Shown: positions 457-63,560, counted from the first letter of the stretch. The stretch is 64,000 nucleotides of DNA from Ruditapes philippinarum (GCF_026571515.1 NW_026866180.1:186001-250000), one strand, 5' to 3'. Translations and numbers: made by a program. The notes: a model not told the origin generated them from the sequence alone.

Positions 457-3146
457 GCAGACCAGCAGCTCATAGAAACATTACAGACTAATATTAAGGA
501 AGATGATCGTCTGAAAGAGCAACTCCCTGGATTAGTGAATGAAAGTGCCGAGCTTCTTGGCCAACTCGATATCTTCTACATAAACGACATCATGCAGTTT
601 GACTTTGAATTATCAGAGTTAGAATGGAACGATAAAAAGGAGCTTGGTAGCGGAAGTTTTGCCAAAGTGTACACGTCAAAACTTACGCGAAAAAATAGAC
701 CAGTTGCAATAAAGGTGTGTATGTGGCAATACTGTATTTTATAACTTGTAGAATACGATAACAAAATCAACAAGGCATAGCAACTTTCACAAGCCACAGC
801 CCTGATGTAAGCAAACCACAAGTGGCCACCGCAAAGGTATCTAGCTAAAAACTAACAAGGGCACAGAAGGCGGCAACGAACGGGACCTACCGATAAATGA
901 TACTAATTGTTAAAGATGATGAATATTTAAGTTCTTTTTCATTGATAGACTCCAAGCTTCTCGTGCCATCGAATATTCAACATATTCTTTTACACCATTC
1001 ACATTTTTCCTCTTATCATTAGCGTAACAGCTATTACAATAGTTAATATTATGTAGAGATATCGAGAAATAAAAACGGATTTTGAATGTTTTGTTTTAGG
1101 TTGCCACTGACGTAGTCGACCAGTCCAATGTCACACAAATCCTAACCGAGGACAGAACTATGAGGTAAAATAATTTTCTATAAAATGTCCTGTAATTGTT
1201 AAGTGTAAGCAATATGTGACAGTTTTTTGTCGACATATCAAAATCTTTTAACCCGAAACTTGTAACGAATGTGATGTTTTGATTTTTACAAGTTATCATG
1301 AGATATAATGAAAACTGTTTTATGTTTGATATATACGCACGTTTATCTAACATCGGAACAAAAGTCGTCCAAGATCAAAACTCAGTGCGACATTTAATAT
1401 CCCACAATGACATTATTGTAACTATCCTCTTTTGTTATGTATTATACAGTTAAGATAAAATAATTAATTTTGATAACTTCAGGGATTTGAAACATGCTAA
1501 CATCGTTCGGTACTACGGTGCGTCCTATATTAAAACAAAGAAGGGTTTACAGTGGATAATGGTGATGGAGCTTTGCCAGACAACTCTTAAACAGATCTAT
1601 ACTGGTAATTTTGTTTAATTAATAATAATGTCAGCAATTAATTGGTTAACACAAGACTTATCAGTAGAAATGCAGTGTAAACACTTAATCAGTGTAAATT
1701 TGAAAGAAAGAGACTGCCAACAATTGTTAAGGCAAGTACCGTACTATTCTTTTAAATACAAATTGGAGTTATGATACATTCTTGAGTACACAGCTGTTAA
1801 AGTTGTATTAGACAAGGCGCTAGTACGAGCCCAATATGATCAGTATTGTTCTCAATTATGTTTAATGACCTCTTTCTTTCTTTCTCATTTTTGACATAGG
1901 TAATATGGGATATGATATGTATTCGATATGGATGTATTGTTCTCTGGAAATGGAATCGATGCTATATGGGATATAATAAGCATTTGATATAGATTCTGTA
2001 AATGAAAACGAGCCTAAATTGTTAAGAATGGACAATTATGAATTCTATTGGAATATCACATGGTTCAAAGGCTTAAATTTCATTGGTTATATTTTATAAG
2101 GTGTGAAGTAATATTTTTTGTATTATTTACAAGTGTTCATCCATTTTACAATTTATCACATAAAACATGTAAATAAGTAATGTAGATTAAATTAATGAAT
2201 TTCAGGAAGCGATAGAAATGAGCGTATGATTCCTGGTTGCCTAGGAAGTGACCACCCACGATTTGCTCAGGCAGCCAAGTATATGCTTGACCACGCCTAC
2301 CAGATATGTACTGGCCTGGATTTCATACATGAGAAAGGATACACCCACAGAGATATGAAACTAGAAAACGTTCTGGTAAATACATACTGCTTAGTTTGAC
2401 CAAGGGTTTAGATTATCATCATTGGACGTGTCAGATGTTTGATCGCATCGGCTTTATGAACTATATCTTTAATAGTTTTAAACTCAAACAGCAAGTTCTC
2501 GATTTATCTGCATTACTATCTTAATATATGTTTGATATTTGTTATCCCGATACTCAAATAACAAATACCTTTTAGAAAATTAAGAATTCACATGCTTCAA
2601 AAAGTTAAATTCTGTTAAGCTATTTCAATTCATTCGGTGATGTAATAAATAATATTCGAAAATAAATACAAAAGTTTCCATATGTTTCATATATTCTTAA
2701 TGATAATTTTACAGTTGGCAGAGGGAAATGTTATCAAGATCACAGATGTAGGCGTCACCAAGGTAACACAGATGCTTTGTAAAACTGCTGATGGTTCCCC
2801 GGCTTATATGGCACCGGAAGTGCTGCTTTCGAATGAAATCCAAACAAACAAGATTGACATTTACAGTTTTTCTCTCATATTCTGGGAAATGTGGTTTGGG
2901 AAGGATGTAGCTGATGAAATCAACAAAGGTTTACTCGGGTATGGATACCATGGAAATGCAATGGAAGTACTCAAATCTCAGATTGCAAGGACAGATGGTT
3001 GGCGGCCACCACTGAGTTCACCTAAACGTCCGCCAGAAATGATTACTGATGTATTGAAAAGGGGATGGTCTTCCGATCCTGAAAAGAGGCCAAGTGCAAA
3101 TGAGTTTGGAAACACTTTGAAACATTTTCTGAAGAACAACCTCTAA
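457..3146 (+). CDS. Copy A (3' part only, exons 13-17) of a dynamin-like GTPase-protein kinase fusion gene (DSTYK/Dusty-like); kinase domain looks catalytically intact
   Basis: GT-AG exons 457-714, 1100-1164, 1483-1604, 2206-2375 and 2715-3146 splice in frame. Kinase motifs: ELGSGSFAKVY, VAIK, alphaC Glu (ILTED), [44 protein letters not shown]. The 5' exons lie upstream of the window. Confidence 0.9.
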
Positions 3147-4192
3147 AAAAGCATATAAATTATACAAACGTATAGGTGAACCGCTGAAAAAGACTTACAT
3201 GATTACATACAGGAATAGAACTAATGTCATGATAGGCTATAAAGGTTTTAACAAAGCAAATTGCACAATGTAATTCATAAATCATCAACACAATTTCGTT
3301 TATCTATTATTTTGACATCAATTCATGTATAAGTTTTTGATGCTTAGGTATAAAATTCGCGGTTTAACAATCAGTGAACATAAAAATACATATTTGATTT
3401 GTGAAAATTCAAGGAGTTTGTCTACAGTTATTGTTTACACATTATTTAAACGTTCATTTGCGTAGTGATTAACCAGTAAAGAACATTATTCTATTAAAAT
3501 TTATAATTTAGTTTTCATCACAAATTGAATGTGGTGACAAAACATTCTTTTAACATTTCACAATTCAGATCCATACAATTACACTAATAAATCGTTCAAT
3601 ATTTACTTTTTTTACTAATCCTCGGGTTGGATAAGATTTCAAGACAGTTTTGTTTCGTAATATTCTTTTCTGTTAATATTGATTATATTAATCAATTATC
3701 ATTTGGTTTACATTACAATTCAATATCTTTTGTATATTTTTAATTTTGATTTTATTTAATGCTTGAAATAACAAAGAAGACATTTGTTTTTGTTTCATTT
3801 AGTCAAGAGTAAAGTCAAACGTTTAGTCAACGGAACAGCAAATGTTTATAATCATCAATGTTTCCATTTAAATTTGAAATGATTGTTTTATATTACATAA
3901 TACATTACTCCATTGTTCAAGATCTGTTTTATGATAATCGTTGCAAAAGTTGAAATAGAAAAAACTATGAGGTGACAGCTACACTTTTACGGCTTTCTTC
4001 TATCTATGCCCTACAAGAACCGAATGCTCATAGTTTGTTATTCGTTTTGTATTTTGTTTTATCGGGTTTACACAAAATGCTCAAACTTAAAGGTTTAAAC
4101 ATATTTTATTTTGTGCCCGATGCTCATTCACACTATGTTTATACACTGTTAAATTATATTGTTTTGTTTGCGTGTGGGTAAGTTATTTTATG

Positions 4193-7494: not shown

Positions 7495-10400
7495 ATGGCG
7501 GGGAAACAAATGACGAAACAGGATTCTAAAGATATCCCCAATATACAATGTGCTGAGGATATATCACTGTTATATATTCCACAACTAAGTACTCTAGCAA
7601 AATGCTGGAATGTGGATATGTCAGGATTTGAAGAAAAGAAAGACATAGAGGATAGATTGATCACATTCTGGACAAGTAACAGGAAAAAGGAAAACTCCGA
7701 CTCTGTAAGTTATTCATGTTTTATTGCGCGTATGTGGAACAGTAAAAAGAGTATTACACGTAATATCTTTATTGCCCTTAGAAATAAGTGTTGTCATGCA
7801 ATATTTTTTTGTAATCTATAAAAAGAAATACTTAGATATTACCAAACCTTGCCATCTTCCCCGAATTGTGGACAAACATATGTGACGTTTATAAGACACA
7901 AGATAAATCAAGACAAGGTCTTCAAAATGTGGTTCAATTCTTATTGTTACTACATCAAAAAGTATTATCAAAAGAAAAGATCTTTATACATGCACTCAAC
8001 TACAAACACACACAACCTTTAGACAATATCAAGCATGTATTTTACAATCACTATAATTATTATTGAATGTGCCTGTTTTACCTTTAAGTGAATCTTTACG
8101 TGGCATTTACAATAAATCGTATTATATTATATTACAAAAAATGTTTTGGCACATATTTCTGGCAAAACGTGAATTCTGAATCCAGTTATGAACGTAATTA
8201 AAAATGTTATGAAAGGACGGACCCATCCATGCTTTGTAAAGTTTTGTTTCATTCAAATATTTTCACAACAATTCAATAACAAATTTAACATAGCAGGAAC
8301 ATAAACTGTTAAGTAAAATCATTATTGGTAAAATATGCAAAATATTTCACATGACTTAGTTAATGACTAGAAAATAAAATATCAGGAATAATCATTTGAC
8401 TTCTTAACGAATAATTTATTTAAAAAAAACCTTTAAAAGTCGTGTGTTTTTAATGCTTAGATGTTAAGTTTAACATTAACGATTCCCGATACCATTAAGA
8501 GATGGTTGTTTTTATTTCAATTTACTGTATCACAAAACGAAACATTGTCATTATCAAGCATGTTGTTTGTAGTTTTTCTAAACCTATGTCTCAAGTAACA
8601 CAGCTCGGGCAAAAGTACAGAACTTCAAGATGGCCACCAAAAATGACAAAACTTCTTTGCTGTCCAGAATTATGCATTCTTTGCTTTCTACAGTCATGTG
8701 TTCTTTGTCAATTAATATATGTCCATTGCTCAATATAAGTAGACGGTCACCTGCGAAAGAAATTGGTAATTATTGGAAAATGGAAAATAATCCAAAACTG
8801 TCTTCACACACAGAGTTGTAGAAGAAAGTTTAATATGAATGATAAGTTTGCAGATAGGAACATTAGATAATGTAACATTCTTCATGAATTTAAGTGGGAA
8901 CCTCTGGAGCTTGCTAGCGCTTTCACGGAATATCAAAAGACAAAACAATCGTTGCTCGAAAAGTACCGAAAAGCTGAGGCATTGTATAATAACTTCACAC
9001 ACAAAATAAAAGCAAATCTTGAACTGTCCCATCCAAGTAAGTCATTCACTATTCAATCAAAATTATAAAAGCATTTTCTAAAGTTCACAAGCACATATGA
9101 CATAGCCTTAGATGTGTTTTTGTCTGTTTCGAATATGTTTTAGTTTCGATTTATGTATAGATATTTTAAATGTGATGACTGAATAAAAAGAAGTCTATCT
9201 GAACCTATCTTATAAAAATGTTATTTTATATTACTTTATTTTAGACGTATGTACACTTATCAAAGAGAGAGAAGACTCGTTTAAGTCGGGAGAATGTACG
9301 ATTGTTATAGCTGGAGATATTGGGGCTGGTAAAACAAGTCTTCTGAACTTGATTCTAGAGACACAGATATTCCCAGTCAATTCACTAAAGTGTACCAACA
9401 CTATTCTAGAAATACGGAGCAGTGAGAAGAAGGATGCTGTTTTCTACTACAAACAACAGATGTTAAATAACGACGATAGAGAACGAAAACTGCAACCAAA
9501 GATTATAAGCCTGAGTAACTTGCAAACATACACGTTTTTATACATATATATTAATTGTGTAACATTTATAAACAAACCACCAATATCCCAATCATTATGT
9601 TAGAAATATTAATAGATCGACATGTTTTTCAACTTACTAAGTGTCAGAAATGTATAGACATAAACCTTTTTATAAAATAAGACGAAATTATTTTTTCATC
9701 TCTGTTAAGCGAATCAATGATGTTTTTATGAAAATTTTAATAGTGAAAATGTCAGAATTTTATAACCAAGTCAAAACAAATCAAATCAAGAGCGATTCTT
9801 GTATTTAAATGTAATGAATAATTAAGTTTGATTGATATTTTGACATTTATGTTACAGAGAGTCTGGATGGAATTCAGGAATTCAAGGACTGTGTTGCGGA
9901 GTATGACCTATTGGACGACAACCCTTACGACCGATGCGAGGTGTTTTACCCATTCAAAACACTCAGTGTAAGTAACTAGATGTAATAATGTACGTACTGT
10001 TAACTTGCAGATATTCAAAAGTGACACGTGACGGAACATTTTATTATATATTTAATATCACTCAATGTTTTATAAGAATATCTTGAAAAAGTGCGTTAAT
10101 TTTGTCATCATTTGTGTCAGACGGATTAGTTATATATGTAAATCACGGATACATCAATGATATATTATGATATATTATAATTACAAGTATTTTTGTTATA
10201 TCTTAACTTTAATCGAGAGTTTCTTGACAAAGTTGTATTAATTTGATTTTAAGAAAGGCTTGGTGATTGTAGACACCCCATGTATAGAAGGTGGGGGTAA
10301 TATCGATCAACAATTACAAACATACTTCTCGAGAGCGTTCGGCCTTATTTACGTCATCAACACGAACGCTGCTTATGGATTTCAACAAAGCAGGGTTTGT

Positions 10401-13400
10401 TAACTTTCAAATGTACCAATTAAATTCTTTGTTTTGTCTTGTTTCTTGGTACTTTCCTGCTCGATATTGTAAGATTAACATTATTTATTTACTTATTTAT
10501 TGTAAGTTTACTGAAAATGGATTATTTCAAACGAAATTTTTCTTGCATATAACACTGTTTTAAAAGCAACAGAAAATAGAACACTGTTTTAAAAGCAACA
10601 GCAAATATAACATATTATGATGAATATTAATATTAATTGACGTGTACATTTTAATTTACAGCTCGGCAAATTGTTGAAAACTGTTGTCAATAGCAGCGAA
10701 GATTTCAGCCCTGAAGCGTCCCTTTTCATCGGCAATAAATGGGAGCATGTACCCGAAGGAGACCGCGCTGACGTGCAAGAAGATATCTTTTACAAACTGA
10801 ATCAGGTGTATCCTGGGACACAACAAACGCAGATACAGTACATGTCTGTGAAAAAGGTAAAAGTATTCATTTGAATAAACCATAGTTGGTATCGTTATCG
10901 TTGGTGTGAACTCACAATTAAGTGTCTATTCGTCTACATTTATTCGAAAGAAAGTACGATTAAATTAACATGTTAACATGTATTTTTGTGTTCCTCACAG
11001 AATTATTAGAATTGTCTCACATCGCTTCAGTCAGAGCCATCAATGTTTGACAGCATCTTAGCACTACTAAGCACTAGAGGATTCTTCGCGAGCGATAGGA
11101 AGTAGTTCCTTCTCATTTGCCGACAGCATTGTAATTGTTTCAAGTTGTTTTAATTTTTTAAATTTAGGAGACGGTAATTTTGATGGCCGGCTTCAAAGGC
11201 AACAGGTGTACTGAGTTATAACTAGGCATTTAATTCTTCATCACTAAATTCGACTGACATTAACCATTTCATTAATGATAATGTAATGCGAAACAATTTC
11301 AAGGGTTGTTCGGCATAACTCCATAACTGATATAATTTGCAAAAACCCTTGATGTTTTCACACATGATGTACTAATTCAATTATATCGTATATCTCTGAA
11401 ACAAAAATAAAGAACAAACAAACTTTAAATCTAAGATGCATATTTCTTTCAGTCGACAGAATTCCAAATGAAGTACGAAACAAAATTAGAAGAGCACAAG
11501 ATTCTCCTGTTGAAGGTGTCCCAGCTTGTATCCAGTAGTTTCAGACAAGTATTAGTGTCAAATTACTGGTAAAATACAAAGTCATTTCAAGATGTAATAC
11601 ATTATCAAGTCACCTTTATCTAAGTATTGAGCATATAAAGTTTAAAAATCTCATATGTATATCATTTATAAAAACATATTCAATCAAAGCATATTTAATT
11701 TTATCACGGAAATTTTGTTTTTGAAATGAAGATTTGCTATTAAACAAAGTGGTCCTAAAATGTACCATTTATTATATAATAATAAAGGAAAATGCCGGCA
11801 AAATGGTGAAAAAATAGTTTTACACTAATCATGTATCACTTTAACAATTCCTTCTTTTTTTTCCGTCAAAGGTGGCTTTCCTCATTCCTATCACGATCAT
11901 TGTACCTCCTTCGCGTGACAAGCGTACATAAGGAGATGACAAGTGAGGAACTAGACATATATTTCGAGGACGTCCGTAAACGCGTGGAAGATCTACAGGT
12001 GATTAGTATGATACCGCCTGATTAAAACTTTGTCGCAACTTATTGTTGTAAAATGTTTGTATAATTTATAAGAAAACGATATATCGGATTCCTTTGCGAA
12101 ATGAAATACATTTACAAACCTTTTATCTAAATATTTATTAAATTATCTGTCAAGCGCATTCAATACGCTGTTTTCCCCAATTTTGCAAAAGAAAAATTTT
12201 TTTGTTTTTAAATTCCCCGAAAAGCATTCTTTTTTTTAAAATAAGACCCTAAAAAAGCATTGCTTTTTAAAAATGATTTCTTTTAAAAAGTAAAAATTTT
12301 TGTATATTTCCCTTGGGGAAATAAAATTTAAAAAAATAATATTTTTGCAAAAAAATGGCGAAATTTCGAAGCTTTTGGGAAAAAAGGGAGAAAAAAATAA
12401 AAAGGAAAATTTCCAAAAGAACCCTTCAAACGTACTGGGGAAAAAAGAGCCCTTTTAGACAGGTAAATTGCAAAAGCTGTAAAAACATTGGAAATTAAGG
12501 GCGGGTCAAAAGCATAGTAATGTTAAAAATATTGTAACTAAAAATAGCCAACTATTGTTCATTAAATTTATTTTAAGCTTCTACCGTAGAGTAAGCTTGT
12601 AGCTGGCTTCGAACAAGTAAACAATACTGGTCTATATATTGAATTATGAGTTGCTCGATTCATCTGTGTTGAAAATTACAAGGCCACACTGCTCCAATTA
12701 ACAATTAACTTCAATTATCAGTTTAATATGAGATTCGGGTAAAAAAAGAAAGAATATGTTGAAATAAAACTGACTTCATGTATTGACCCTGGCAGTTAAT
12801 AAACAAAATAAATGCACTTTTTCTGATAGGCCTATTATTTTCTGATAGGCCTACATACATGGTTGGTATCGTCCTCTTATGACGTTTTCAAGTCATATTA
12901 TGTCGGTCTAAGTGGAAATGGTCTAATATTACATTTAAGTCATACATAACCCAAATATTTCTTAAATAATTGTATGAAATGGAACAGTTATTACATTTTA
13001 ATTTACTGTGTAGAATATGTAATTGGGAAGACACTAATGAGTGTCCCAGGATTGAGAGAAGGTGGAATATCGTTGCGGATGCCGCTGCTGTGAAGATATC
13101 AGAAAGAATATCACGCGAGCTTGATAACTGGTTAAGACAGAACAACATTCTCCGTGTCCTAGACAACGAAATCATTGAAGTTTTCAAAACAGAACTCGGA
13201 TTGATTGATAGCCAAGTGAAAGAACTAGAAGGTAAATTGCATATTGCTCGCAAAGCAGATATCAAACGATATGTGTTACTGCCCGCTACTTACAATTCAC
13301 AACAATAGTGAGCCACATAATTGTACTAAAATGAAATACATGAAATTCTACTGGTGCCAACGTTGGACATAGCAAATATTACTGAGGTTTCAAAAATGCT

Positions 13401-16400
13401 TTTCATCTATTACAGAATATTTTGTCAGAAGCCGGGGTGGCAATATGTGTAAGGTAATGTGTAAAGTTCCTGTAAAAGCCTTGTTTCCAAGAAAGAAGAC
13501 AAAAGTAGAAAAAACATATTCAACACTGGGTTGCGCTGTCAGTTGCCTTGGAATGCTAGACACATATATGAGAAATGCCAGAAGAATATTCAGGTAAGCA
13601 ATATACTTTGAAAAAATATATATGCTTTTCTCTATGCTGTTTAAAAACATTGAAAATGAAGCCTACTGTATATAGTACACATTCAGGCACACACATTTTA
13701 GGTCAAAATGCACGACAAAAAAATCTATAAAAATGACCGTTTCATTCAGTTTTTTTTTTACTCTTTGTAAATACTTAACATAACGTCGAATTTTTGTTAG
13801 GTTGTATGCCAAACTGATAATTTTACAGATTATTTGGCGACTTTCCAGCTATATCGGTGGAGAAACTCAGGTGCCCCTCCATACTTGAGTTCATGCACGA
13901 TTGGGCACCTGAGTGGAACCACCGACGTTCCGTAAGCTAGCTGCATAGCTTCATCACATGTAAGATTCAAGGGCAACCGGTCAAAAGCCAAAGACCTTAA
14001 CCAACTGGTTATGTACACCCCTTCAAAATGTAAAATTGATTGAGCCGATGACAAAATGCTTTGTAGTAGCTTTAACACTTTACTTGAAGAAATTCCAAGC
14101 AATAATATAAATTTAAAAAACGAACTTCACAATTGGCTTTTAGATGCATGGCTACATGTGCAATGTTCGTCCTGCATTTTGTCTAATTGTCACATGGCAC
14201 TTTATCTAAAGATATTCTGTTCAAGAGTATAGTTAAAACGAGAGCATTAACAAATATCGTCTTGTAAAAATGTTCATTATAAACGTTGTAAAATAGTCAC
14301 ATGAGGTAACCAGCATGATAACTAACTCGTTACATATTGTTAGCCTAAATTATCATTGAGTTTGGAACAGTCCTTGAAACAACCCAATATGTGCTATTTG
14401 CACAATTAAATATACATTTGAATCATTTGTATCAGAGATTTTAATCACACAACAAAGGCAAGGAAAATGTCAGAAGCGGCTGTTCTAAGTATAGAAACAA
14501 TACTGTCACACAAAGAATTTGGCGGGAAACTGAGAAAATTCTTTGACCGTTATTTTAAAGAAATTGATGAAGCGGCAAAAGGAATTTCTGAATTTGTTAA
14601 GGTTAGTAGAGAAAATTGTTGAAATGAGGTAATATAAAGATGAGCATATTATTATTAAGATCTAAATTATCAAAAACTTAATTTAAATAAGATAAATACT
14701 ATAATGGTTAAGTGGTCAAGGCGCCGTGATGTTATATAATACATGCTTAATGATTTACATTGGTTAGTAATAAAAACAATGTTAGTACCTACTCATTAAG
14801 CATGTACAATGTATATATAATTATAATGTAAATAATAAGTCATAAAGGGCTTTGTTCTAAAACATTTGAAATGACATTACAGTTAAATTTTATATTTAAA
14901 AAACAACAAAAAAGGTAAAATTTTTGAACAAAATTCAGTAATTTTTTAATTTGATTTAAAAATTAAAGGGTTTTTAAATTTTACTATAAAAATATTACTG
15001 TATGTTGTAGTTAAAAACCTTAAAGACTTTAAATTTTTTTTAATTTCCCAAAAAAAAATAAATGGGGTTTTTGGGAAAAGATTTTTAAACCCAAAACCTT
15101 TCCAAAAAAAAATTTTTCTTTGTTTATTTATAAACTTTTTATTTTTCGAACATTTTCTTTTGAAAGGGTTAAAAAATTTATTTAAAAAAAACAATTCTTT
15201 AAATTTTATGGAAGAAAATAAGTACTTATAATTGTATTAAAAAATTCGTAAATATTTTTCTTATTAAAAGGGCGGATCAGCAGCTTATAGAAACTTTAAC
15301 CGGGACTAACATTGAAGAAGACGATTGTGTGAAGGAGAAACTCCCTGAATTAGTCAATGAAAGTGCTGAGCTTCTTGGCCAACTCGATATCTTCTTTATA
15401 AACGACATCATGAAGTTTGACTTTGAATTATCAGAGTTAGAATGGAACGATAAAAAGGAGCTTGGTAGCGGAAGTTTTACCAAAGTGTACAAGTCAAAAC
15501 TTACGCGAAAAAATAGACCAGTTGCAATAAAGGTGTGTATGTGGCAATACTTTATTTTGTTACTTGTAGAATATAACAAAGATCAACAAAGCATAGCAAT
15601 GTTTGCAAACCGCAGTCCGACAAAATCTAACAATAAGTGACCACAGCAAAGGCATCCTGCAGGTCAACGTACAAGGGCACTGACGGCGGACATGGGTGCG
15701 GCTTACCGATAAATGATACCATTTGTTTAAGATGATGTATATTTTTCCTTTTTCTATTGATAAATTCCAAGCTGCTTGGTCCATCACAATTTTCAGTATA
15801 TTCTTTTACACCATTTATATACTTCTCTTATTATTGGCCTAACAGCTATTACAATTAAAGTAATTGTTATGTTAAGATATAGAGAAATAAAAAAGGATTT
15901 TAAATGTTTTATTTTAGGTTGCCACTGACGTAGTCGACCAGTCCAATGTCACACAATTCCTCACCGAGGATAGAATCATGAGGTGAAATCATATTCTATG
16001 CTTTTACAGTTAAAACGTCCTGTACTCGTCAAATGTAGCGAAATGTGACAGTCAAATACATTAATGTCAAAACTGCAATGGGTGATATTGTTGTATGTTT
16101 GATATACACACGTATGTCTGATATCGAAATAGAAGTTACCAAATATCATTTTTATATATTAAACTTGACATTTAATACCTCGAAATTACATTAAACGATT
16201 ATTTACTTTTGTTATGTATTTCAATCAGACATATTCAGTTAAGATACAAAATAATTATTTTTTTGATAATTTCAGGGATTTGAAACATGCTAATATTGTC
16301 CGGTACTACGGTGCATCGTACATTAAAACAAGTAAAAGGTTTACAGTGGATTAAGGTGCTGGAGTTATGTCTGAAAACCTTAAAAACAAATCTATACTGG

Positions 16401-18109: not shown

Positions 18110-18125
18110 CAAAGCATATAGACTT

Positions 18126-20673: not shown

Positions 20674-20805
20674 NNNNNNNNNNNNNNNNNNNNNNNNNNN
20701 NNNNNNNNNNNNNNNNNNNNNNNNNNNNNNNNNNNNNNNNNNNNNNNNNNNNNNNNNNNNNNNNNNNNNNNNNNNNNNNNNNNNNNNNNNNNNNNNNNNN
20801 NNNNN
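20674..20805. other. Assembly gap (132 N)
   Basis: Run of N. The paralogous position in the next unit (about 40955-41046) is an AAT/GAA microsatellite. Confidence 0.99.
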
Positions 20806-49700: not shown

Positions 49701-50180
49701 CATAATTATATGAATATCTTAACAAATCGTCAGAATGTTTGTGTAAACGAGTATGATATATCGATTTCTAAGTCTAGGATATTTTTGTTGCGAAATAACA
49801 TACGCTTTACAAAAGAACTGTATAAGTAGATATTTCCGCTTTTTGCATGAGGAAACATTAGCGAATCGTGCAAGGGTAGAACTTAATGACAGGTTTATAG
49901 ATAGTTACACTGCAGAAAATTTTAGCGATTTTAATCAATTAGCCAAATTTGGAGCACTACTTGAAACACCTAAGGTGTGTCAATTAACTAAAACTTTGAA
50001 TGTTTCGTAACAGATTTTAATGTCACAACAACTACAAAGAAGATTTTAGATGCGACTGCACTGTGTATATAAACTCTACTGTCACACAAAGAATTTAGCG
50101 GGAAAATGAGAAAATTCTTTGATCGTTACTTTAAAGACATTGATTAAATTGCGGAATGAATTTCTGGATATCTTTAAATG
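43714..50180 (+). pseudogene. Copy D, 5' (SAP/HeH-like + GTPase + stalk) half: disrupted
   Basis: Exons 43714-43908, 46576-46705, 46900-47169 (premature TAG at 47112-47114), 47557-47657 (9-nt deletion), 47865-48005, about 48234-48431, about 49209-49324 and about 49506-49632. Exons 9-11 are absent. The exon 12 remnant (about 50014-50178) has stops at 50070, 50145 and 50157 and has lost its GT donor. Confidence 0.85.
48651..48928. mobile_element. Multi-hairpin interspersed repeat in intron 6 of copy D
   Basis: Colinear with 35483-35761. Confidence 0.8.
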
Positions 50181-51756
50181 AGAGAGGAAATCATAAACAT
50201 GAGGTTTCATAATATCATTATGATATAAATGATTCAGTACTCAATTTTATAACACGTTTCCTCATGACTGACAGTATCTTACTTCTAATAACTGTCAAAG
50301 AAAAACACACTCATAAATGCACATTTAATGACACAAAAATTCGGACCCTCAAGGATTCCACCATATAGCCGCCGATAAGCCGAAATGTTTTCAACCGACC
50401 ATTTCTTTTCCACTGTCTATTACAAGTTTTATTCTACGGTTAGCGCCCATAGTTGCGGCACCAGATCGAAACAAATGTAAGACATGTCTTACAAATAAAC
50501 TCACTCGAATACCATCTTTCGCTTAAATTCACCGCCCAGTCACGGCAAGAATACCTATATGATACATATATTGTTCTACCTTAGATAGTTAGAACACCGA
50601 TATGTGGTGATTTTTTTAAAGAAACTAATGTGTGACCGTAGTTAATGGTAAATAAACCGCTTCATTTAATTTTAATTTGTCACATAACCTATTCACGAAT
50701 TGGATTAAAGGCACTGTGCTGAACTCCCGTAACAGGTTAACAGGTAATGATGAAAATTTGAAACGCTCACATTCTGAACCTTTTTGAAAGAATATATATA
50801 CTACGGATCATAGATTGTTCTTTACAAGACATTGCGGCGTCTTTGATTGCAGAGAGAAGCTCCTGACTGTTTGCCAAATACCTACACAAGTATTTCATTG
50901 AAGGTTCCGTGATAACCGCCGTATACTCATTTCGGATTATTCAAAATCAATTTTTTTCCATTTCATGTTAAATAATGTGTCTGTATTGAATGTCTGTTAT
51001 TCTACATGTTAACATTTTGCCATTCATGATTTTATGTCATTATTTTGTATTGGCACTCGTACTGAAGGTTTTCATGGCGTGAAATCCTTTTGTTTGATAA
51101 CAATTTTTTTCTGAGAGCGCGTGTCAGTATTTTTGCAGCAACCCCTCAAGCCCAGAACATTTAGCAGCACCCTTCCCTTATGGCTAGAGTGGACTGCGTC
51201 ATATGTAATCTTTCCAGTGTGTCGAACGTATATATGATGCATAAAACTAAAGAAATTCTCTGATATCCCATAATCAATGTAATTTATCTAACTACTGTAC
51301 ATGTCTGTCTCTTTATAAATATCCATTTGTATCTATTTAAAGAGAGATACTATAGTGAGCACACAGCTTAAATATATCGTGGGAGAATATTTTGTAACAT
51401 AGATTTAAAATTGTTTTATAATACTGACACAAATTTTTACTGTGAGTGTACCAAATAACCTTCTTCGCAGCCAGTTTACTCAGACCATAATGTATGTTTC
51501 ATAGTTTGCTCAATGCTGCTAAAAGCGCTGTCCCTGTAATATCAAAATTATCAAATGTTGCAATAACTAATGGTACAAAGTATTGATGCAACTTCTTACT
51601 GAAAGGACTGGCTTTCCAAGAACTGAATTGTTAAATAACAATCTGAAATATTCAAAAACGAATAACAGAAAACCGTTCTTTCGATTAAATGATAAATCAT
51701 TGACAATAAGTCACCCAGTTCACAATTGAATTGATACTGATTATTGTAACATGAAC

Positions 51757-51761
<5 letters not shown>

Positions 51762-51823
<62 letters not shown>

Positions 51824-51832
51824 GGGGGGGGG
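51762..51832. repeat. (TG)n microsatellite followed by poly-G
   Basis: About 30 TG units. The paralogous site in copy C (about 33575) has only TTGGGGG. Confidence 0.95.
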
Positions 51833-52100
51833 AGAAATAAGTGTCTTGGAACCGCGCTGATAGGTAAAAACAGTTATATAGATCTGATACAAATTTTGTT
51901 CTGTTAAATAATTAAATGACGAACATGTATCTAATTTTTGCATTTCATAAACAAAGTAAACACTTCCTTAAAAACGTAATGAATGAAAATAAATTATTTA
52001 CTTTCTAAAATCATATAATATTTGCAAATATTAGAAATCGTATAATATTTGAGGTTACAGGCTTAAAAGAAATGTTTTCCTGGAGTTAGAAGATGATCGT

Positions 52101-54869
52101 ATGATGTATAAACTCCCTAACTTAGTGAATGAAATTGCCGAGCTTCTTGGACAACTTGATATCTTCTACATAAACGACATCATGAAGTTTGACTTTGAAT
52201 TATCTGAGTTAGAGTGGCAAAATAAAATGGAGCTTGGAAATGGAAGATTTGCCAAAGTGTACAAGTCAAAACTTACAAGAAATAACAGACCAATTGCAAT
52301 AAAGGTATGTATTTGGTTATACTTTATTGAGTTACTTGTGAAATATAACAACAAACATCAACAAGGCAGAGCGACGCTCATTGACAGCAGCACGTATTCA
52401 AGTCACAATTGCCCACCGAAAAACGCATCCAGCAAGGCAACAAACAAGGGCAAATATAGTGAACTTAGAGGGGCGAATAAATATATACTACCAATAGTTA
52501 AATATGAAAGGTGTTGAAACACTTTTTCATTAATGAATTTTGATGCTTGTTCCGTCAGAATATTAAGACAATCATTTTGCACCTTTCAGAATTTACTTTT
52601 AGTATTGATGTTGCAATTGTTATAATAGATAATAAATATTACGAAGAGATATTCAGTAATAAAAACTGATCTTGAATGTTTTTTGTAGGTTGCAACTGAT
52701 GTAGTCGACCAATCAAATGTCAGGCAAATCCTCAACGAGGACAGAATCATGAGGTGAAACACTTTTGTACGCATTTAAAATAAAAAAAGTTCTGTACTCG
52801 TCAAGTGTTTCTGAAATGTAAACGTAAAAGACAGCAAAGTCAAAACTGGTTTCGAATGTGCTGTCTTGATTTTAACCATGAGATTTAAGAAAATTATTTG
52901 TATTTTTTTCACCCGTATATCTGACAACGGAACAAAAGTTGTCCAATATAGTTTTTATCTATTAAAATTTGGTGCGGCATTACATGTCTCAAAATAATTT
53001 TAATCAACTATCCTCTTTTCTTGTGTATATCACTAAGAAGTATAGAATTAAGATGAAGATTTTCCCCCCATAATTTCAGGGATTTGAAACATGCTAACAT
53101 CGTCAGGTACTACGGTGCGTCCTATATTAAAACAAAGAGAGGTTTACAATGGATAATAGTGATGGAGCTATGTCAGACAACTCTCAAACAAATATATACT
53201 GGTAAATTGTATTCATTATCAAGTAAATAAAAACAAAAGTTACAGCTTTGAATCGAAGACAGAACAAAAGACTTATCCGTATGGATTCAGTGTAAACAAT
53301 TTAATAAGTTTAGACTTGATTCCACGATTCAAATATAATCAGTATTCTCAAAATGTGTTCTCAATGCTTACTAACATATTTATTTGACATATATGACATT
53401 TTATCATCCTTAGTTGCTTCAAATACAATAAGGAATTGATATGATTTTTGACCTTGGAAAATAAGCTTAATAGAGTACGATATCTATTTGATAAAAAATA
53501 TGTTGGACTCTAAACATGCGAACGAGGCTATATGAGGTGAGATATGCATTTAAAATGAATGTTTTGTTCTCTGGAAATGGAAACAAATGTTACTTTTTTG
53601 GTTGTAATATGCATATAGACGTGGATACGATAATGATTTCTATTGGATCATCTCATCGTTCAAACGCTGAAAGTACATTGGTTTTTAAGGTGTGAAATAA
53701 TGTTTTAAGTTTACTACTATAAATCAATTTTAGTATTTATTAAACTATCACATAAAACATGTTAAAAGATAATATAAAAGAAGTTAATCAATAACAGGAA
53801 GCGAAAGAGATGAGCGCATTATTCCTGGTTGCTTAGGTACTGACCACCCACGATTTGCTGAGGCAGCCAAGTATATGCTTGACCACGCCATCCAGATTTG
53901 TACTGGCCTGGATTACATTCATGGAAAAGGATACACCCACAGAGATATGAAACTAGAAAACGTTTTGGTAAATACATACTGCATAGTTTGGCCCAAGGTT
54001 AAGTTTGAATTTTTGGACTTGCGAGCTTTTTGATCCTACGGGCTTTATAAATTATATCATTAAGAGTTTAAACTCAAACAGCAAGTTTTAGATTTATCTA
54101 CATGAAGATCATAATATAAGTTTGTTATTTGTTATCTCGATGCTCAAATTACAAATACCTTCAGTTGTAGAATAGTAAGAATGCAAATGATTCGAAAATG
54201 TTTTTAAACATTATTTTACTATTTTATTTAGTTTATACAAATTTATTTTAGTTCGATTGTGTTGGAAGCTATAAGCTTATTGAAACAATCTCGAATCCGT
54301 TCCTGGAACCAACCAGTACTAAGCAATGCATGTAAAGTTTCTTGCTCAAGGAAACTGTTTTATTTCATTCAGTGATGCCATTAATGTATTGGAAAATTAA
54401 ATAAATACGTTTACATATGTTTCTTATAATCTTGGAAATAATTTTACAGTTGGCAGAGGGAAATGTTTTAAAGATTACAGATGTCGGCGCCACCAGGGTT
54501 ACACAGATGCTTTGTGGTTCCCTGGCTTATATGGCACCGGAAGTGCTGCTGTCGAGAAAGATCCAAACAAACAAGATTGACATTTACAGTTTTTCTCTCA
54601 TATTCTGGGAAATGTGGTTTGGGAAGGATGTAGCTGACGAAATCAACAAAGGTTTACTCGGGTATGGTTGTCATGGAAATGCAGTGGAATTACTCAAATC
54701 TCAGATTGCAAGGACATATGGTTGGCGGCCACCATTGAGTTCACCAAAACGTCCTCCAAAAATACTTACTGGTGTATTAAACAGGGGATGGGCTTCCGAT
54801 CCGGAAGACAGGCCAAGTGCAAATGAGTTTGGAAACACTTTAAAACTGTTTCTGAAGAACAACCTCTAA
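52101..54869 (+). CDS. Copy D, 3' half: intact protein kinase exons; either a stand-alone 326-aa kinase or the undecayed part of a pseudogene
   Basis: Exons 52101(ATG)-52304, 52689-52753, 53080-53201, 53798-53967 and 54450-54869 splice in frame (981 nt, no stops). Motifs: ELGNGRFAKVY, IAIK, HRDMKLENVL, DVG, YMAPE. There is an in-frame 4-aa deletion in the activation segment. Confidence 0.6.
54225..54357 (-). mobile_element. 5'-truncated CORE-type SINE
   Basis: The reverse complement reads GTTTCCTTGAGCAAGAAACTTTAC...CATTGCTTAGTACTGGTTGGTTCCAGGAACGGATTCGAG...ACAATCGAACTAAAATAAA, a CORE-like domain plus an A-rich tail. It is absent from intron 16 of copies A and C. Confidence 0.75.
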
Positions 54870-55673: not shown

Positions 55674-55907
55674 AACCGCCGTATGAACATAACCGCCGTG
55701 TGAACACATCTGCGGATGTTTCTAAATTCAAAATTTTACTATTTCACGTTTAAATGTTGAATTCTGCTTAAGCCGGTGCTAGGGGGCGTGGACGGTAACT
55801 TGCACTTTCCAGTACCGTCCATGAACAGGCTCAATCAAACCGAGCCTGCAACATTTTTAATTTTGGCGTGTTGGGCTTTCTTTAGGGATTCTGTATTTAT
55901 CTATTTT
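55674..55907. mobile_element. Multi-hairpin interspersed repeat in the 3' flank of copy D
   Basis: Near-identical to 35545-35761, with a short internal duplication of AACCGCCGT(A/G)TGAACA at its left end. Confidence 0.8.
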
Positions 55908-58824
55908 AATTTAATAATCTAATTAAGGCGCATGCCTTTAGTATAGATATAAGTTGTTATGCAGACATAAAGTCGCTAATGTAATTATTATTCGTTGCTA
56001 AATTATAATTAATTCAATTATGAATTATATATATGACTAATGAATCGATTATTTAGAGTTATACTTCCAATATTTACTTTTTCCCTAATCTTATGATTCG
56101 TTTTATTCTATTCTGTTAATTGATCAATTATATTTGGTTTATATAACAACTCAAATTCTTATGTATCTTTTCAATAATTATATTATTATTATTATTATTA
56201 TTTTATTTAATGCTTGAAATAACAAAGGAGATATCATTTTGTTTCATTTAGTCTACAGTTAAGTCAAGCTTTAAGTCAACTGGACAGCAAATGTTTATAA
56301 TCATCAATATAATCATTTTATAATACACCTATCACTCCATTGTTAAAGATCTGTTTTATAATAGTTGTTGCAAAAGTTGATATAGACTAAATGTGCGATG
56401 AAAGCTACAATTTTACGGCTAATTTCAATTTATGACATATTATAACTCAATGCTGATAATTTGTCATTCGTTTTGTATTATGTTTTATTAATAAGTGGTT
56501 TTACATGAAATACTCAACCCAAAGGTTTTTAACATATTTTGTTTGTACCCAATGATCATTTATACACTATGTTTTTACACTGTTAAAATTATATTGTTTT
56601 GTTTGCGTGTTGGTGTGTTATTCTATAGATAAATCACATTGAATCAATATATGCATTCCTCTTTTGTGTGTTACCCGTTCTTATATACAATGTTTGATCT
56701 AGAATAAGAACCAAATTTGAGAATTGTGAACTCATTTGTTGCAAGTTATCATTCAAACGGTCAAACAAATGGGATAAGAATTGGAGATGGGAGAAAAAGT
56801 AATTGGTGGATATTCGGTTTGATGGAGTCTAATCATGTATGAATGACACTATCATTCACACCCCTCGCACCGGCTTAGGACTTTACATCATTATTTAGAA
56901 TTTTTAATCATCCTCTGATAGAAGTATATGTCAAGTAATATGTGACTCTTTTGAGCCATAGACCAATATATCCTATAATTGCATGCGCTTTAATGAAGTT
57001 TTTACAAATTTGTTCTGTTACTTGCTCAATATAAGTAGTGTAATATTGAAATATGATCAATTTACATGAACAAATCAATGAAAAGTGATTTGAATTTCAA
57101 ACTTTTTGCATTTATGCTTTATTGTTATATAATTTATAAAATTATCACAATTCTGTGTTTGAGCAGATTAAAAACTTAGAAGACCGACGGTTTAAAAAAT
57201 ATATCAATAAAAGTTTTGTCGTTTTTGGTGTACTTTATATTTAGGAACATGTACTTTTCAAAACACAATATCTTATTGATTATTGGCATCCCTACTCAAA
57301 CCTTTGACTCCAACTTAAGGTAAAGTAACATAAATCAGACAACATGACGACTAGAATTGTAACTTAGGAAAATTTGTTGTAATATCATCTCTAATTTATA
57401 CTGTTGATTTATATACGACTGCGTGAAATTTCAGTTTATATACACATGAACAAAACAGTATCGCAGTACCTCAAATGTTTCATATGTCATTCGTTAACAT
57501 TCGTTAAGTTAAAAACAAAAGCTGAACAACATCCACTCAGAATAAAAAGTAGTTCCTCATTCTAGAGTATTGTTACATTTAGATAACTCATCATTAAAAT
57601 ATTTTGCAAGGTTGTTACATGTAAAAGGTTTTGAAAATTGAAAAACCATGCATTGTCATTTGAAAGAAATATTCAAAACTTATGAAAAGAAATTGTTCAT
57701 TCATAAAATCATTGTGTATACCTACGCATCAAACTTCGTATCCACGCATGCGCATGCAAGCATGAATGAATTACGACTAGACGTCGTAAATATAGAAAAA
57801 ATTGTCATACTTTGTACAATAGATATGTCCAAATATACAAAATTTACATTTAGTCAAATAAGTTAACCTTATTTACACGTGCGCATAATTTTTTTCTTTT
57901 TCCAAAATACTTCACAAAACGAGCATGTATATGGAAATCCGTAACAAAAATCTAGGTTATACATTTTTTATTAAATGTTTATACAGTGTAAGTACAGCTT
58001 GAGCATAAATGATACACGAGAAGGGGGATCATATTGTCAAATATTTTATTACATAACTGTTGGTTAACATTGTCCCATTGTGCAAATCGTTGCACTTTAC
58101 ATCTCATAAATATATCTGATGCGAAGTATATTTCCTTATTATTTGATTATTTGAAATTATAAGTTTTCTTTATTTGAATATAAGTTTTGAAATAATATTT
58201 GTTATCTTAATGTTTTCAAATAGCTAAACAGATTGCAACATAATGCATTGTATCGTATTTTCTTTCTTATTAAGGCTATTAAAGTACACTTATGAAATTC
58301 TATACGACGCCGTGAAATCAATAAGCACTGACAGACGACATTTAGAGTATTGTTTTGTGCGTTCTTTTTGTATAGCATTATCCAATAAAAAAGCCCGTAT
58401 CAACTACTGTGTAAAATTTTAAATCAGGAAGTGCAAACGAAATAATTCAAACTTTTCTTATTCAAAGTTGATATTTTGGAATTTAAGGAAATAAATAATA
58501 TGATTTATTCAAAATAAATCAGAATATTTTAACTAGTGCCTAAATTGGATTTTTTTATCTTTATGGAATAAAAGAAAAAAGGTAGTATTGATTTAAAGCT
58601 GCTTGCACGTAGTTTGTGTGCAATTTTTTAACATTTTCGGTTATATATATAACATTTGATTGACAAAACATTCAAAGCGTGACGATATTAAAGTAAAGTA
58701 TTGCTGTACGAGTTAGGATCAGGTGAGGTAAAGATATTCTCATTTTGGAAATAATTTACAAGGCAATGTTGATTATAACATAAAAGCGTTATATACAGGA
58801 ATTACCACATTGACCAACGATTCA

Positions 58825-58985
58825 TGTTGAATTCTGCTTAACCCGGTGCTAGGGGGGGGGGGGGGGCGTGGACGTAGTTTGCACTTGACAGTACCGTCCA
58901 TGAACCTGCTCGATCAAACAGAGTCTGCAACATTTTCAATTTTGCCGTGTTAGGCTTTCTTTCGGGATTCTTATTTTCTCTATTT
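58825..58985. mobile_element. Truncated multi-hairpin repeat upstream of copy E
   Basis: ATGTTGAATTCTGCTTAACCCGGTGCTAG(G)nCGTGGACG...GTACCGTCCATGAAC...GGGATTCTTATTTTCTCTATTT. Confidence 0.75.
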
Positions 58986-59423: not shown

Positions 59424-62400
59424 ATGGCTGACAAAGATGGACATCATCATCATAACAATGTACGCCAAGTTCCTCGCGTTCAATGCGAAGAGGATATACT
59501 GCAATTAAAGATGCAACAGATGAGGATTCTAGCGAAAGATTGGGATGTGGATTTATCAGGTTTGACAGGGGCAGATGGCATGCATGACAGACTTATTAAA
59601 TTCTGGATAGACCGGCAAGAAGGAACAAATAGTGGCACGGTATTGCTTGTTTGTATCTTTCGTCATGTTATTAGTTATTATTATATAATATTAATAATAA
59701 GACCATGTGCGATTTAAAATGACCGGAACTCGACAATAAGAATAACGCATTTGACAAAAATCAAAATGCAATATACATCAATTGATACAAAGGGAGATTT
59801 ATTCCTTCATTTTGAAGCAAAGTATAATATAGTACCATAAAATTTATATTATTATACTATAAATTTAAATATGATCTAGGGATCTTCGTAAACCACCAAA
59901 AACATAGCAAACTAAAAATGATAAAATCAACTACAAAATAATAATATACTAATATAATGTGAACTTTATACTTTACTTTTAATGAAACTTTTATACTTAC
60001 TTTAATGAAACTTTATACTTGAATATAAATATTCTATATCTTCTGAAGCACATAGGACCATCTACCCTTATCTTACCACTATAAAGCTATATGTTACAAA
60101 AAAACATAAGATATCTACAAATTACATATATAAAGTAAGATATATATAGTGTATTGTCTCATTTAACAACGATTGTTTTCTGAAGAGTACACATATCCTG
60201 GTTCGTTATAATGACCCAGTTACACTATCCAATAGGAAGAGATTGTCGTACATGCGTCTCAATAATATTTCAACATCATCTATATTATACAAGACTGTTA
60301 CAAATATCTTGTATAATTATTACACGATTGCAGATATACTTGTATGACTTGGAAACCATTTGAACTGTAGGACAGATACTTGTCTTTCTTCCCAGAATGA
60401 CAAGACAAAAAACACATACCCCTTGCAACATTTACAAGGAGCCCTATTTCCCCGGAATGAAACCATTTCTCGCGATTATACGGAACCACGATTCAGAGTG
60501 CAGACGGTTTGATTCTCGATTCGTCGTGGACGTTTTTAGACTCGTTTTGTTGTCACCATTTTTGATATCTAATATAAAGAAAAGACATTTTCTAAGCAAC
60601 CTAGCGATTCATTAAGAAATTGTCGTGGCTATGGTTTTGTTAGAATTAGTACATTAAGTACCCGGGTATCTTAAATATGTTGAGATGAAATTTATTCCTA
60701 TAACTGTTTGATGTAAAGTTACTTTTTTGGAAAAGAACAAACAGAAATCGGTCAAATATGTACAGTGTTTCATATTATTAAGTTTCAATCAATTATTTTC
60801 TTTTATTTATTTATTAAAGATTTATTTCTCAATGTATGCTCTGTGAAGACATGCCTGAATGTAAATCTATTATGTAATTTAAAGTACATGTATGTTCAAT
60901 CATTTGCGACACTTTAGTCTGCCCATCAGAAATATTGGGTTACAAACATAACAATTAACGTCGCGTTAAACAAGTATCAATTTCAAGTTTTCAACAGTAT
61001 GCATGACAGACGAAAACACGTGTTATGTAAACGTGATATTTTTCCATTTAAGAATTTAATGAAATTCAAGTCACGATTAAGGAAACTGTATTAAATCTGG
61101 CAATGAGAAGTGAAATCACATCTTTATCTGATAATGTATCAACATAAATAATAAAGTTATAAAAATAAAATAAAATGCTCAATAAAATTTATGTTTACCC
61201 TCCATTTATTAAAAACTAAGATCATTATAAATCATTGTGAATGAGTTATGAAGTTCTTACTAAAATACGCTAATGGAATATCTATATCAAAATATAAAAT
61301 ATCAAAGTAAAATATGAAGACGCTAATAACATATCAATTGAGTTGAAATTTGATAGTTGTTAGGTGTTGTTAACCGAATTATTGCGCAAGTTTAATCAAG
61401 TAATTAAAATATTACAAATAAGAGCATGATAAAATGACGCGCGACAAATTATTGCACCGTGAAAACATAAAAAATCCGAATTACCCCAGACTTGTCAATA
61501 ATTGGATAAATTACGTAAATCTCGTTTATTGACATGACATAGTCACACTTCAATGATCGAAGTTAAACAGTATTTACAGAGTAACTACATGAGAGAGGCA
61601 CAAACTTTACCATACACAGACTACATCTGCTTGTCTTTAATTTCTTTGACATGAGGTTGTACAAGATGCATATGATTTTGCATCAAATTATCTTATGCTT
61701 TCTATAGACAGAGTCGGTTGATCTTGCAAGCGCATTCCAAGAACACAAGAAGACACGAAAATCTCTTTACGAAAAGTATAAGAAAGCGGAGAAACTGTAT
61801 GAGAATTTTACAAGAAAAATACAATCCAACCTAGAAGAATCCCACCATGGTAAATCAAAATTTCATACAAGTTCTTTCCTTTACTTCGAGAATAGGTAGG
61901 ACTAGGTCAACTACCGGGTACTTTCTTAACAACAGCCAACTTTCAAAATTTGTCAAAATTCAAAATGTTCCTTCACTTCCACTTTACTTTCCTGTAGTAT
62001 ATTTATATGCGTTATTTGGAATTATACGCATCTTTTTATGGAATGAAAAGAAAAAGTTACATTGAAGGTTCCACATTACCGTATGAACTTAACTATTGAT
62101 GTTTCTTAATTCAAAATATCAGCACTTTCAACTTAAAATGTTTAATTGTACATTAAATCATTTACATCGACCTCATTTTTTTCCACTGCCAATTTTCCCT
62201 TAATTATCTATATATTTCAAAAGGTTGACCGTTATAAAACAGCAATTAATAATTACATACATATGTGTCGTATAGTATATATAATATATATAATCTGTTT
62301 AAATGTAAAGAGATTGACGTACTCTTTCTATGAAATTGAACTGTACCGATATGTTCTTATTTTTTTTATTCCAAAGTATAAATATGAAATCTAACCTACC

Positions 62401-63560
62401 GGTAACATTTTGTATTAAACTTGTTTGCTCACGATTTACATTAAGATAAGAATAACTTCACATTAAGGCTATTATTTATTTTAGTGTGCTAGCAAACCTA
62501 TAGGTAGTATTGTTGATAACGTAAAACATATTAACACTGGTTCATTCAATTGTTTTTAATACATCAATATTTTTTCAATGTCCATCAATTAAGGCGTGCG
62601 CACAAATTTGACTGAAAGAAAAGACTCGTTAAAGTCGGGCGAATGTACGATAGTTATAGCTGGAGAGGTTGGTGCCGGCAAAACAAGTCTTCTGAACTTG
62701 ATTCTAGAGACACAGATCTTCCCAGTCGATTCACTCAAGTGTACCAACACTATTCTTGAAATACGAAGCAGTGATAACGAAGAAGCTGTTTTCTACTGCA
62801 AACCAAAGATATCAGACAATGGGAAAAAAGTCAGAATTCCTCCAAAATTGATCAGCCTAAGTATGATTCACATATATCACAAAGTGTCTTAAAAGACATA
62901 AAAAATATCACTTTATTAATTCATTTCCATACAGATAAGAGAAGATTAGTCCCATATATGTGTCCTATAACATACTTTGGTACCAGAATCTTTTTTTTAA
63001 TCAAGTGTTTCGTACGAACGCAAAATAAACTTTTCCAAACCGACCGCTTTGAATTGGAATATATGCCATACACATGATTTCCAAATGCATGTATGGTCTT
63101 TATGTTGCATAAATCACGCAAGCAGAGATTGTAAAAATGAAGAAATGATAGGAATGATATTCTGTATAATAAATAGATAAATTCGCACAACAATACCGAT
63201 TGGTTCGATGTTGTTATTCTACACATGCTAAGATAAGTGCTAAACAATGATTAACCATTCCTGCATGAAAAGAACTTTACCGGCATTTGTTCGTGTACAT
63301 CATCTTTTGTATTTATTAGTAGTTAAAGCTCTTTGACCGTCAGTTTCTCAAAGTTCTATTTATAAGACTGGCAATTAAGGAACAAATAAAATGTGAAAAT
63401 GCTCAAGTTAACATACTACATAGATGCATATATTTATACGTATGTTTCAGAGAGTCAGGATGGAATTAAACAGTTCAAAGACTGCGTGGCGGAGTGTGAT
63501 CAATCAGAAGACAACCCTTATGAGCGATGTGAAGTGTCTTACCCATTCAAAACACTCAGT
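59424..63560 (+). CDS. Copy E (5' part, exons 1-4; continues beyond the window), the most divergent paralogue of the GTPase-kinase fusion gene
   Basis: Exons 59424-59639 (MADKDGHHHH...VQCEEDILQLKMQQMRILAKDWDVDLSGL...DRLIKFW), 61708-61849, 62594-62860 ([17 protein letters not shown]) and 63451-63560. All introns are GT-AG with the same phases as copy C, and there are no stops. Confidence 0.88.

Follow-up and report, generated by a model that had tools for sequence, protein, structure and literature searches.

The genes described here lie in a 64,000-nucleotide stretch of the Ruditapes philippinarum genome (NW_026866180.1:186001-250000; this whole stretch is called the window) and encode proteins with a dynamin-type GTPase, a helical stalk and a C-terminal kinase. 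Among described systems the closest are the bacterial dynamin-like protein BDLP of Nostoc punctiforme (2J68/2J69), which is the best fold match, and the mitofusin/Fzo branch; in these, a Dynamin_N GTPase with motifs G1-G4 is likewise followed by a helical neck and trunk. However, the clam family has a C-terminal kinase, a short extra N-terminal helical domain and an intron-rich animal gene; its predicted model superposes on BDLP with only 12-13% sequence identity, a TM-score of 0.41-0.46 and a root-mean-square deviation (rmsd) of 12-14 Å, and its membrane binding is putative. The ROCO proteins (LRRK1/2, DAPK1) also carry a GTPase and a tyrosine kinase-like (TKL) kinase in one polypeptide, a pairing which suggests nucleotide-gated kinase signalling. 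Their GTPase is a Ras-like Roc accompanied by a COR dimerisation domain and repeats, whereas the clam family has a dynamin-type GTPase and a BDLP-like stalk. ROCO membership was rejected, as Pfam scans of 15 family members showed no Roc, COR, LRR or ankyrin; LRRK2 entered the Foldseek list only via its kinase, at rank 26. DSTYK, the human gene for which is a disease gene for congenital anomalies of the kidney and urinary tract (CAKUT, a urinary tract malformation) and spastic paraplegia, resembles the clam proteins in having a non-kinase N-terminal region of about 650-700 amino acids (aa) and then a kinase that ends the protein, and some clam-family members are named 'DSTYK-like' or 'DUSTY-like' by NCBI. 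In contrast to the clam family, with its significant Dynamin_N match and invariant P-loop, DSTYK clusters lack Pfam Dynamin_N. For NUGGC/SLIP-GC, the likeness is that of a vertebrate 'SLIP GTPase' (P0009, 1755 aa with four matching stretches) to the clam GTPase exon (E 9e-11). Mx, GBP and bacterial DynA belong to the same dynamin superfamily, and the original prediction took oligomerisation-driven defence from them by analogy; however, no specific sequence or fold affinity to the clam family was seen, and a defence role is putative.

Five collinear paralogues of a 17-exon type, each 14-16 kb long, were found head to tail on the + strand by self-comparison of the open reading frames (ORFs) and by mapping the RefSeq protein XP_060573768.1 to the contig. 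The same mapping yielded no sixth copy at contig positions 158-269 kb. Coordinates follow the numbering of the window, with negative values and values above 64,000 lying outside it:
-10846 to 3146, + strand: copy A (LOC132731583), with only exons 13-17 (457-3146) in the window and exons 1-12 upstream
7495-18109, + strand: copy B, entirely in the window, a pseudogene
23084-38330, + strand: copy C, entirely in the window, intact
43714-54869, + strand: copy D (LOC132731570), entirely in the window, decayed
59424-73681, + strand: copy E, with only exons 1-4 in the window, intact beyond the window end

The predicted set of five head-to-tail paralogues with a common exon structure was thus recovered, with two copies cut by the window ends and only three of the five (A, C and E) intact. 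Taken as a whole, we think it probable, with moderate confidence, that the locus is a five-copy array of BDLP-type dynamin-kinase fusion genes (about 1010-1020 aa each) in which GTP-driven pairing would gate the kinase, with stress or danger signalling as a guess at the process served.

The gene structure was consistent among the intact copies, in which exon lengths were identical except for in-frame differences in exons 1, 3, 12 and 13. The 17-exon model of copy A reproduced XP_060573768.1 (LOC132731583 isoform X1, 1012 aa; one of three RefSeq isoforms) letter for letter. Copy C was spliced from 17 exons, all with GT-AG junctions, into 3060 nt encoding 1019 aa and a stop codon with no internal stop, exactly the product that had been predicted. 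The open frame of copy E, modelled from the mapping and the neighbouring contig sequence, was also intact and gave a product of about 1014 aa. The exons of the three intact copies in the window were as follows:
457-714, 1100-1164, 1483-1604, 2206-2375 and 2715-3146 (including the stop), + strand: copy A exons 13-17, 17-exon model
23084-23293, 25805-25946, 26147-26419, 26653-26762, 27039-27179 and 27424-27618, + strand: copy C exons 1-6, splice model
28552-28667, 28958-29084, 29496-29605, 29846-30063, 30441-30618 and 31481-31646, + strand: copy C exons 7-12, splice model
33822-34106, 34853-34917, 35227-35348, 37385-37554 and 37899-38330, + strand: copy C exons 13-17, splice model
59424-59648, 61708-61849, 62594-62860 and 63451-63560, + strand: copy E exons 1-4

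Judged from the gene sequence, GTPase, stalk and kinase are one polypeptide, as had been predicted. In copy A, the last residue of exon 12 is 664, which falls within a predicted helix at 637-676. Exon 13 of this copy (residues 665-750) carries the remainder of that helix, a further helix at 681-709, and the glycine loop and VAIK lysine of the kinase; the kinase strands occupy 725-752 in the model, and the Pkinase match begins within the exon piece 433-741. A single exon therefore spans the stalk helices and kinase subdomains I-II, indicating that the fusion is real. The corresponding exons of copy C were:
31481-31646, + strand: copy C exon 12, the last purely stalk exon, with a phase 0 donor AG|GTGAGT
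33822-34106, + strand: copy C exon 13, the fusion exon, with the last stalk helices followed without interruption by the glycine loop and VAIK lysine of the kinase

The same order was found in all ten full-length relatives tested, in which Dynamin_N occupies residues of about 130-280 and Pkinase those of about 720-990. Contigs of only 3.1-3.7 kb, the size of a cDNA, as against 14 kb for the clam gene, encoded several relatives of 980-1015 aa.

The GTPase was examined with XP_060573768.1 as the full-length proxy for searches and folding, and exons were also searched. Pfam Dynamin_N scored 37.5 bits (cut-off 27) on the single exon piece 9187-9600 and 60.4 bits on XP_060573768.1. All the predicted motifs were intact in copies A, C and E, namely G1 GEVGAGKT, the P....CT context with the G2 threonine, G3 DTPG and G4 NKWE; copy B was an exception at G3. 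Across 60 relatives, the GTPase motifs were kept in 57-60 and G1 in every one. In copy C they lie in these exons:
26147-26419, + strand: copy C exon 3, P-loop G1 GEVGAGKT and G2 threonine context, with the Dynamin_N match on the paralogous exon
27039-27618, + strand: copy C exons 5 and 6, G3 DTPG and G4 NKWE

An AlphaFold2 model of XP_060573768.1 was built with the 60-sequence family alignment (pLDDT 81, pTM 0.66). When it was compared with the PDB by Foldseek, BDLP took ranks 1 and 2 (2j69_A, E 8.6e-16 over 716 columns; 2j68, E 5.2e-14 over 752 columns) and all further matches were kinases. In the ESM Atlas, residues 1-680 fell beside bacterial dynamin family proteins and mitofusin clusters, and bacterial dynamin family proteins were also the nearest sequence relatives outside the family. 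The GTPase is thus a BDLP/mitofusin-type dynamin with a predicted neck and trunk at residues of about 80-710, and the assignment to this branch made beforehand held. The predicted trunk tip (segment 552-600), a possible paddle, was disordered, basic and hydrophobic, with low model confidence. A PDB sequence search with P0166, a fragment model lacking the P-loop that served as a GTPase-only proxy, returned chance matches only.

At the N-terminus, the model has two short helices at 20-37 and a long helix at 48-70. The only SAP-type match was Fan1_SAP on copy C exon 1 (E 0.033; 14.6 bits, below the cut-off of 27), and none was obtained in copies B, D or E; the N-terminus is weakly SAP-like by sequence, and the SAP/HeH label given to it was not established. 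In copies C and D, the frame of exon 1 continues past the donor (23294-23386 and 43918-44031) and encodes the N-terminal helical motif a second time, a stretch which residues 1-90 of the RefSeq model of copy D (XP_060573745.1, at 43714-43983) take in.

The C-terminal domain, residues of about 720-1010, is a TKL-type protein kinase. Pkinase was found on four kinase exon pieces and scored 147 bits on XP_060573768.1, so that both expected Pfam domains were above their cut-offs. In the VIA structure comparison, the match list for the whole model was taken up by kinases only, with Z about 31 against CTR1, JAK2 and BRAF (CTR1: Z 31.1, rmsd 2.4 Å over 261 residues), and by sequence the domain was nearest to tyrosine kinases and TKL kinases. 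The catalytic motifs of copy A were intact (VAIK, HRDMKLEN, TDVG and APE); DFG was replaced by DVG in most of the 60 family members. The catalytic residues were kept in about 48-50 of the 60 relatives, and about 10 had pseudokinase-like substitutions. Copies A and E keep the VAIK/VALK lysine, the HRD aspartate, the catalytic asparagine and the DFG aspartate (in TDVG). In copy C, the catalytic loop in exon 16 (37385-37554) reads HRNMKLEK, with HRD changed to HRN and the catalytic asparagine to lysine, and from its sequence this kinase looks pseudokinase-like.

Two of the five copies have decayed. Exon 9 of copy B was degenerate (weak alignment with net indels) and its G3 motif reads DTPC; kinase exons 15 and 16 were frameshifted (split-frame tblastn matches at 16271-16336/16323-16385 and 17129-17167/17169-17300) and exon 17 had lost its 5' part (residues 870-903 unmatched in tblastn). 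Copy D gave no alignment for exons 9-11, which are deleted; its exon 2 was truncated, a premature TAG follows ...FYYKQ in the 3' part of exon 3, and kinase exons 13-17 were retained. Its RefSeq model, XP_060573745.1, is a 548-aa patchwork with 95-100% identity to copy D, in which exon 8 is joined straight to exon 13 and which ends after exon 15. By contrast with these, purifying selection acts on copies A, C and E, with a ratio of nonsynonymous to synonymous divergence (dN/dS) of 0.09-0.30 in every domain, at a dS of 0.2 for A-C and about 1.1 against E. Together with the pseudokinase-like copy C and many further loci in the genome, this agrees with the birth-and-death family that had been proposed.

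Copies A and C were 92% identical in protein sequence, but the identity of the exons was a mosaic: A resembled C in exons 1-12 (most at 93-100%, exon 2 at 89%), while in exons 13-14 A resembled B and C resembled D (90-92%). The mosaic points to exchange between neighbouring copies and suggests, on these sequence comparisons, a breakpoint near intron 12 left by gene conversion or unequal crossing-over. The array is old in part, since copy A matched a Mercenaria orthologue better (76%) than it matched copy E (71%).

Sequences closely resembling the last kinase exon were also seen on the small contigs C9113 (3694-4116, + strand; 26668-27090, - strand) and C5323 (7025-7441, + strand), with 84-89% and 65% identity to copy C, respectively; RefSeq names the C9113 fragments 'mos-like'. 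C5323 may be a haplotig of copy E, because its score almost equals that of the copy E exon.

Members of the family were found in bivalves, abalone and the octopod Argonauta; in the stony corals Porites, Oculina, Stylophora and Pocillopora; in the nemertean Lineus; in the hemichordates Saccoglossus and Ptychodera; and in amphioxus. The searches run here returned no vertebrate member. The Dynamin_N plus Pkinase architecture was already precomputed from Pfam for dozens of proteins (>50, in five phyla), nearly all named "uncharacterized", with a few called DSTYK-like, DUSTY-like, STY46-like or Fer-like. A FastTree phylogeny of 60 members showed two deep clades and several old paralogue groups within molluscs, and placed the clam array with Mercenaria, Mactra, Mya and Dreissena. 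A family-profile search located many further loci in the clam genome, on contigs including C3673 (50-118 kb), C2848, C4682, C8106, C11685, C7445, C8340 and C12839. Some of these have much larger exons (e.g., profile positions 379-766 in one open frame), indicating other subfamilies and clusters in this genome. This is therefore an ancient metazoan family that comprises several old groups of paralogues and has expanded locally in bivalves. One coral protein named 'shkA' (P0184) turned out to belong to the family, its gene model being broken, and is not DSTYK. Two relatives were longer, with HEPN_DZIP3 and TRADD-like_N (Oculina patagonica P0174, 1426 aa) or HEPN_DZIP3 (Mytilus coruscus P0171, 1465 aa) ahead of Dynamin_N and Pkinase; these may reflect a genuinely longer architecture or the merging of adjacent genes in the models. 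The family had been called undescribed, and this holds for the literature, in which our search found no published description; however, the genes are already modelled in RefSeq (LOC132731583, LOC132731570) and the architecture is precomputed in five phyla.

The naming of DSTYK as the nearest known family was borne out in one comparison and not echoed in another. The nearest ESM Atlas clusters without Dynamin_N were chordate DSTYK (927 aa, 0.94, 223/256 features), with mollusc and arthropod DSTYK-like clusters also near and other kinases at 0.86-0.87. However, true DSTYK was absent from the results of a word-based search with the kinase region, in which CTR1/EDR1-like kinases were the next matches. 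The DSTYK affinity is accordingly put forward as a sequence-based lead only, and the significant Dynamin_N match and invariant P-loop keep the family from being filed as DSTYK proper. With a Drosophila protein (P0185), which is not DSTYK either, hhalign of the family profile aligned the kinase only. A bolder view, which we hold as possible and no more than tentative, is that the family is the ancestral, catalytically live form of DSTYK. The N-terminus of about 650 aa in vertebrate DSTYK would then be a degenerate BDLP-type dynamin, and the family would form a second, dynamin-based class of GTPase-gated kinase parallel to ROCO/LRRK. The active GTPase would have been kept in cnidarians, lophotrochozoans, hemichordates and amphioxus, with recruitment to HEPN/TRADD-N danger signalling in some lineages.

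RNA evidence came from contigs of public runs aligned to the window, for which 15 of 46 joints were listed. Joints in copy C were seen at 29603/29844, 30061/30439, 30615/31478 and 34104/34851, corresponding to exons 9-10, 10-11, 11-12 and 13-14, in three runs; the exon 11-12 joint was present in runs X2 and X4, and one X2 contig begins exactly at 33822, the start of exon 13. Very high depth was observed in all four runs over intronic stretches of copy C at 32013-32213, 32817-33218, 34224-34826 and 30204-30404 (summed word depth up to about 270,000, with many loose ends). These stretches probably stem from dispersed repeats or pieces of transposons that are transcribed elsewhere and do not belong to the gene.

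Other features of the array were also recorded. An assembly gap lies in the spacer between copies B and C, about 2.5 kb after the stop of copy B and 2.3 kb before the ATG of copy C:
20674-20805, no strand: assembly gap (N run)

The flanks of this gap (20279-20668 and 20808-21148) were collinear with the C-D spacer (40520-40929 and 41049-41372) at 86-88% identity. Disruption of a gene by the gap was rejected, given these collinear flanks and with no exon or reading frame touched. A 171-aa ORF in intron 15 of copy C (35615-36127, + strand) is repeated in part elsewhere in the array, within introns and spacers, at 55761-55919, 48782-48928, 58831-58950, 32097-32228, 40642-40764 and 30257-30397 (the last on the - strand); it had no Pfam match and is probably a repeat element. 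A 123-aa ORF in intron 12 of copy D (51599-51967, - strand), with a paralogue at 33370-33672 (- strand), gave only weak, sub-threshold Pfam matches that were rich in His (ZrgA, SelP_N) and is probably low-complexity sequence.

Several observations weigh against reading the locus as an array of GTP-gated fusion kinases. The structure model is that of the copy A RefSeq protein, not of spliced copy C, and membrane binding is suggested by the BDLP analogy and a loop modelled at low confidence. While the RNA joints of copy C covered exons 9-12 as well as 13-14, the 15 joints listed of 46 did not include that of exons 12-13. Exon 13 was covered far less deeply than the stalk exons in runs X1 and X4, though comparably in X2, and RNA-contig depth seems to run tens of bases past the exon 12 donor (31647-31710), where read-through would meet a translation stop at 31671-31673 and give a kinase-less protein. 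A kinase-less isoform, or mostly GTPase-only transcripts, is possible. The unlisted joint and the low exon 13 depth, like the truncated RefSeq patchwork of copy D, would also fit two adjacent genes, one for a dynamin-like GTPase and one for a kinase, that had been wrongly merged in prediction. We regard such a merger as highly improbable, given that exon 13 alone holds both conserved stalk helices and the kinase N-lobe, that the frame is open through 17 exons in three paralogues, and that the same fusion recurs in the precomputed proteins of five phyla and on cDNA-sized contigs. The chance that every copy in the array is a non-functional relic appears equally slight: B and D are broken and C is without its HRD aspartate and catalytic asparagine, but A, C and E keep 3-kb open frames with low dN/dS at a dS of 0.2-1.1, spliced RNA contigs are present and copy A has three RefSeq isoforms.

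What the proteins do is a separate matter, on which the original prediction proposed a cell-autonomous innate immune sensor or effector, whose kinase would switch on when GTP drives oligomerisation at a membrane or on a pathogen ligand. The expansion in tandem, with some copies decaying, the many further clam loci and the occurrence in bivalves, corals, amphioxus and hemichordates with no vertebrate member among the search results are consistent with such a role, as are HEPN_DZIP3 (coral and mussel) and TRADD-like_N (coral) before the same GTPase-kinase core. Fusions of TRADD-N to GTPases are known from invertebrate immune and apoptosis gene expansions (PMC8195603); however, that paper is without any mention of dynamin, and the two extended relatives could be merged neighbours. 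Further, dN/dS lies at 0.1-0.3 and shows nothing of diversifying selection or an arms race, and no recognisable ligand-sensing repeat domain was present, so an immune role, which is argued by analogy, seems to us rather doubtful. A housekeeping factor for organelle or membrane remodelling, in which the BDLP/mitofusin-like part shapes membranes, the kinase regulates locally and the array is ordinary duplication, would suit the BDLP fold match, the mitofusin clusters among the nearest Atlas neighbours, the strong purifying selection and GTPase motifs that are near-invariant across phyla. DSTYK, the nearest named family, is not known as an immune gene, which points the same way. Against this, arrays with pseudogenes and pseudokinase copies are unusual for a housekeeping gene, and a transmembrane anchor or organelle-targeting signal was not evident in the model, for which no formal test was made; we consider this role unlikely.

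If the array encodes GTP-gated dynamin-kinases, as we favour, binding of GTP would make the G domains pair and the stalk change its conformation, as in other proteins of the dynamin superfamily, probably at a membrane touched by the trunk tip. Once paired or oligomerised, the proteins would have their C-terminal kinases next to one another for mutual activation and downstream phosphorylation, and GTP hydrolysis would reset the switch. The GTPase would be the constant core and the kinase the output, which in pseudokinase copies, C among them, may become a scaffold. Our guess at the process is signalling of a stress, danger or cell-death type in invertebrate cells.

No paper was found on a natural fusion of a BDLP-type dynamin to a kinase, although this one has been kept from corals to amphioxus and multiplied in bivalves. 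The family may account for the uncharacterised N-terminal two thirds of human DSTYK. If GTP-driven pairing does gate the kinase, phosphorylation would be coupled in a new way to the state of a membrane or oligomer, a principle that can be compared with LRRK2. In the clam array, gene birth, exchange between neighbours, pseudokinase formation and decay are seen side by side.

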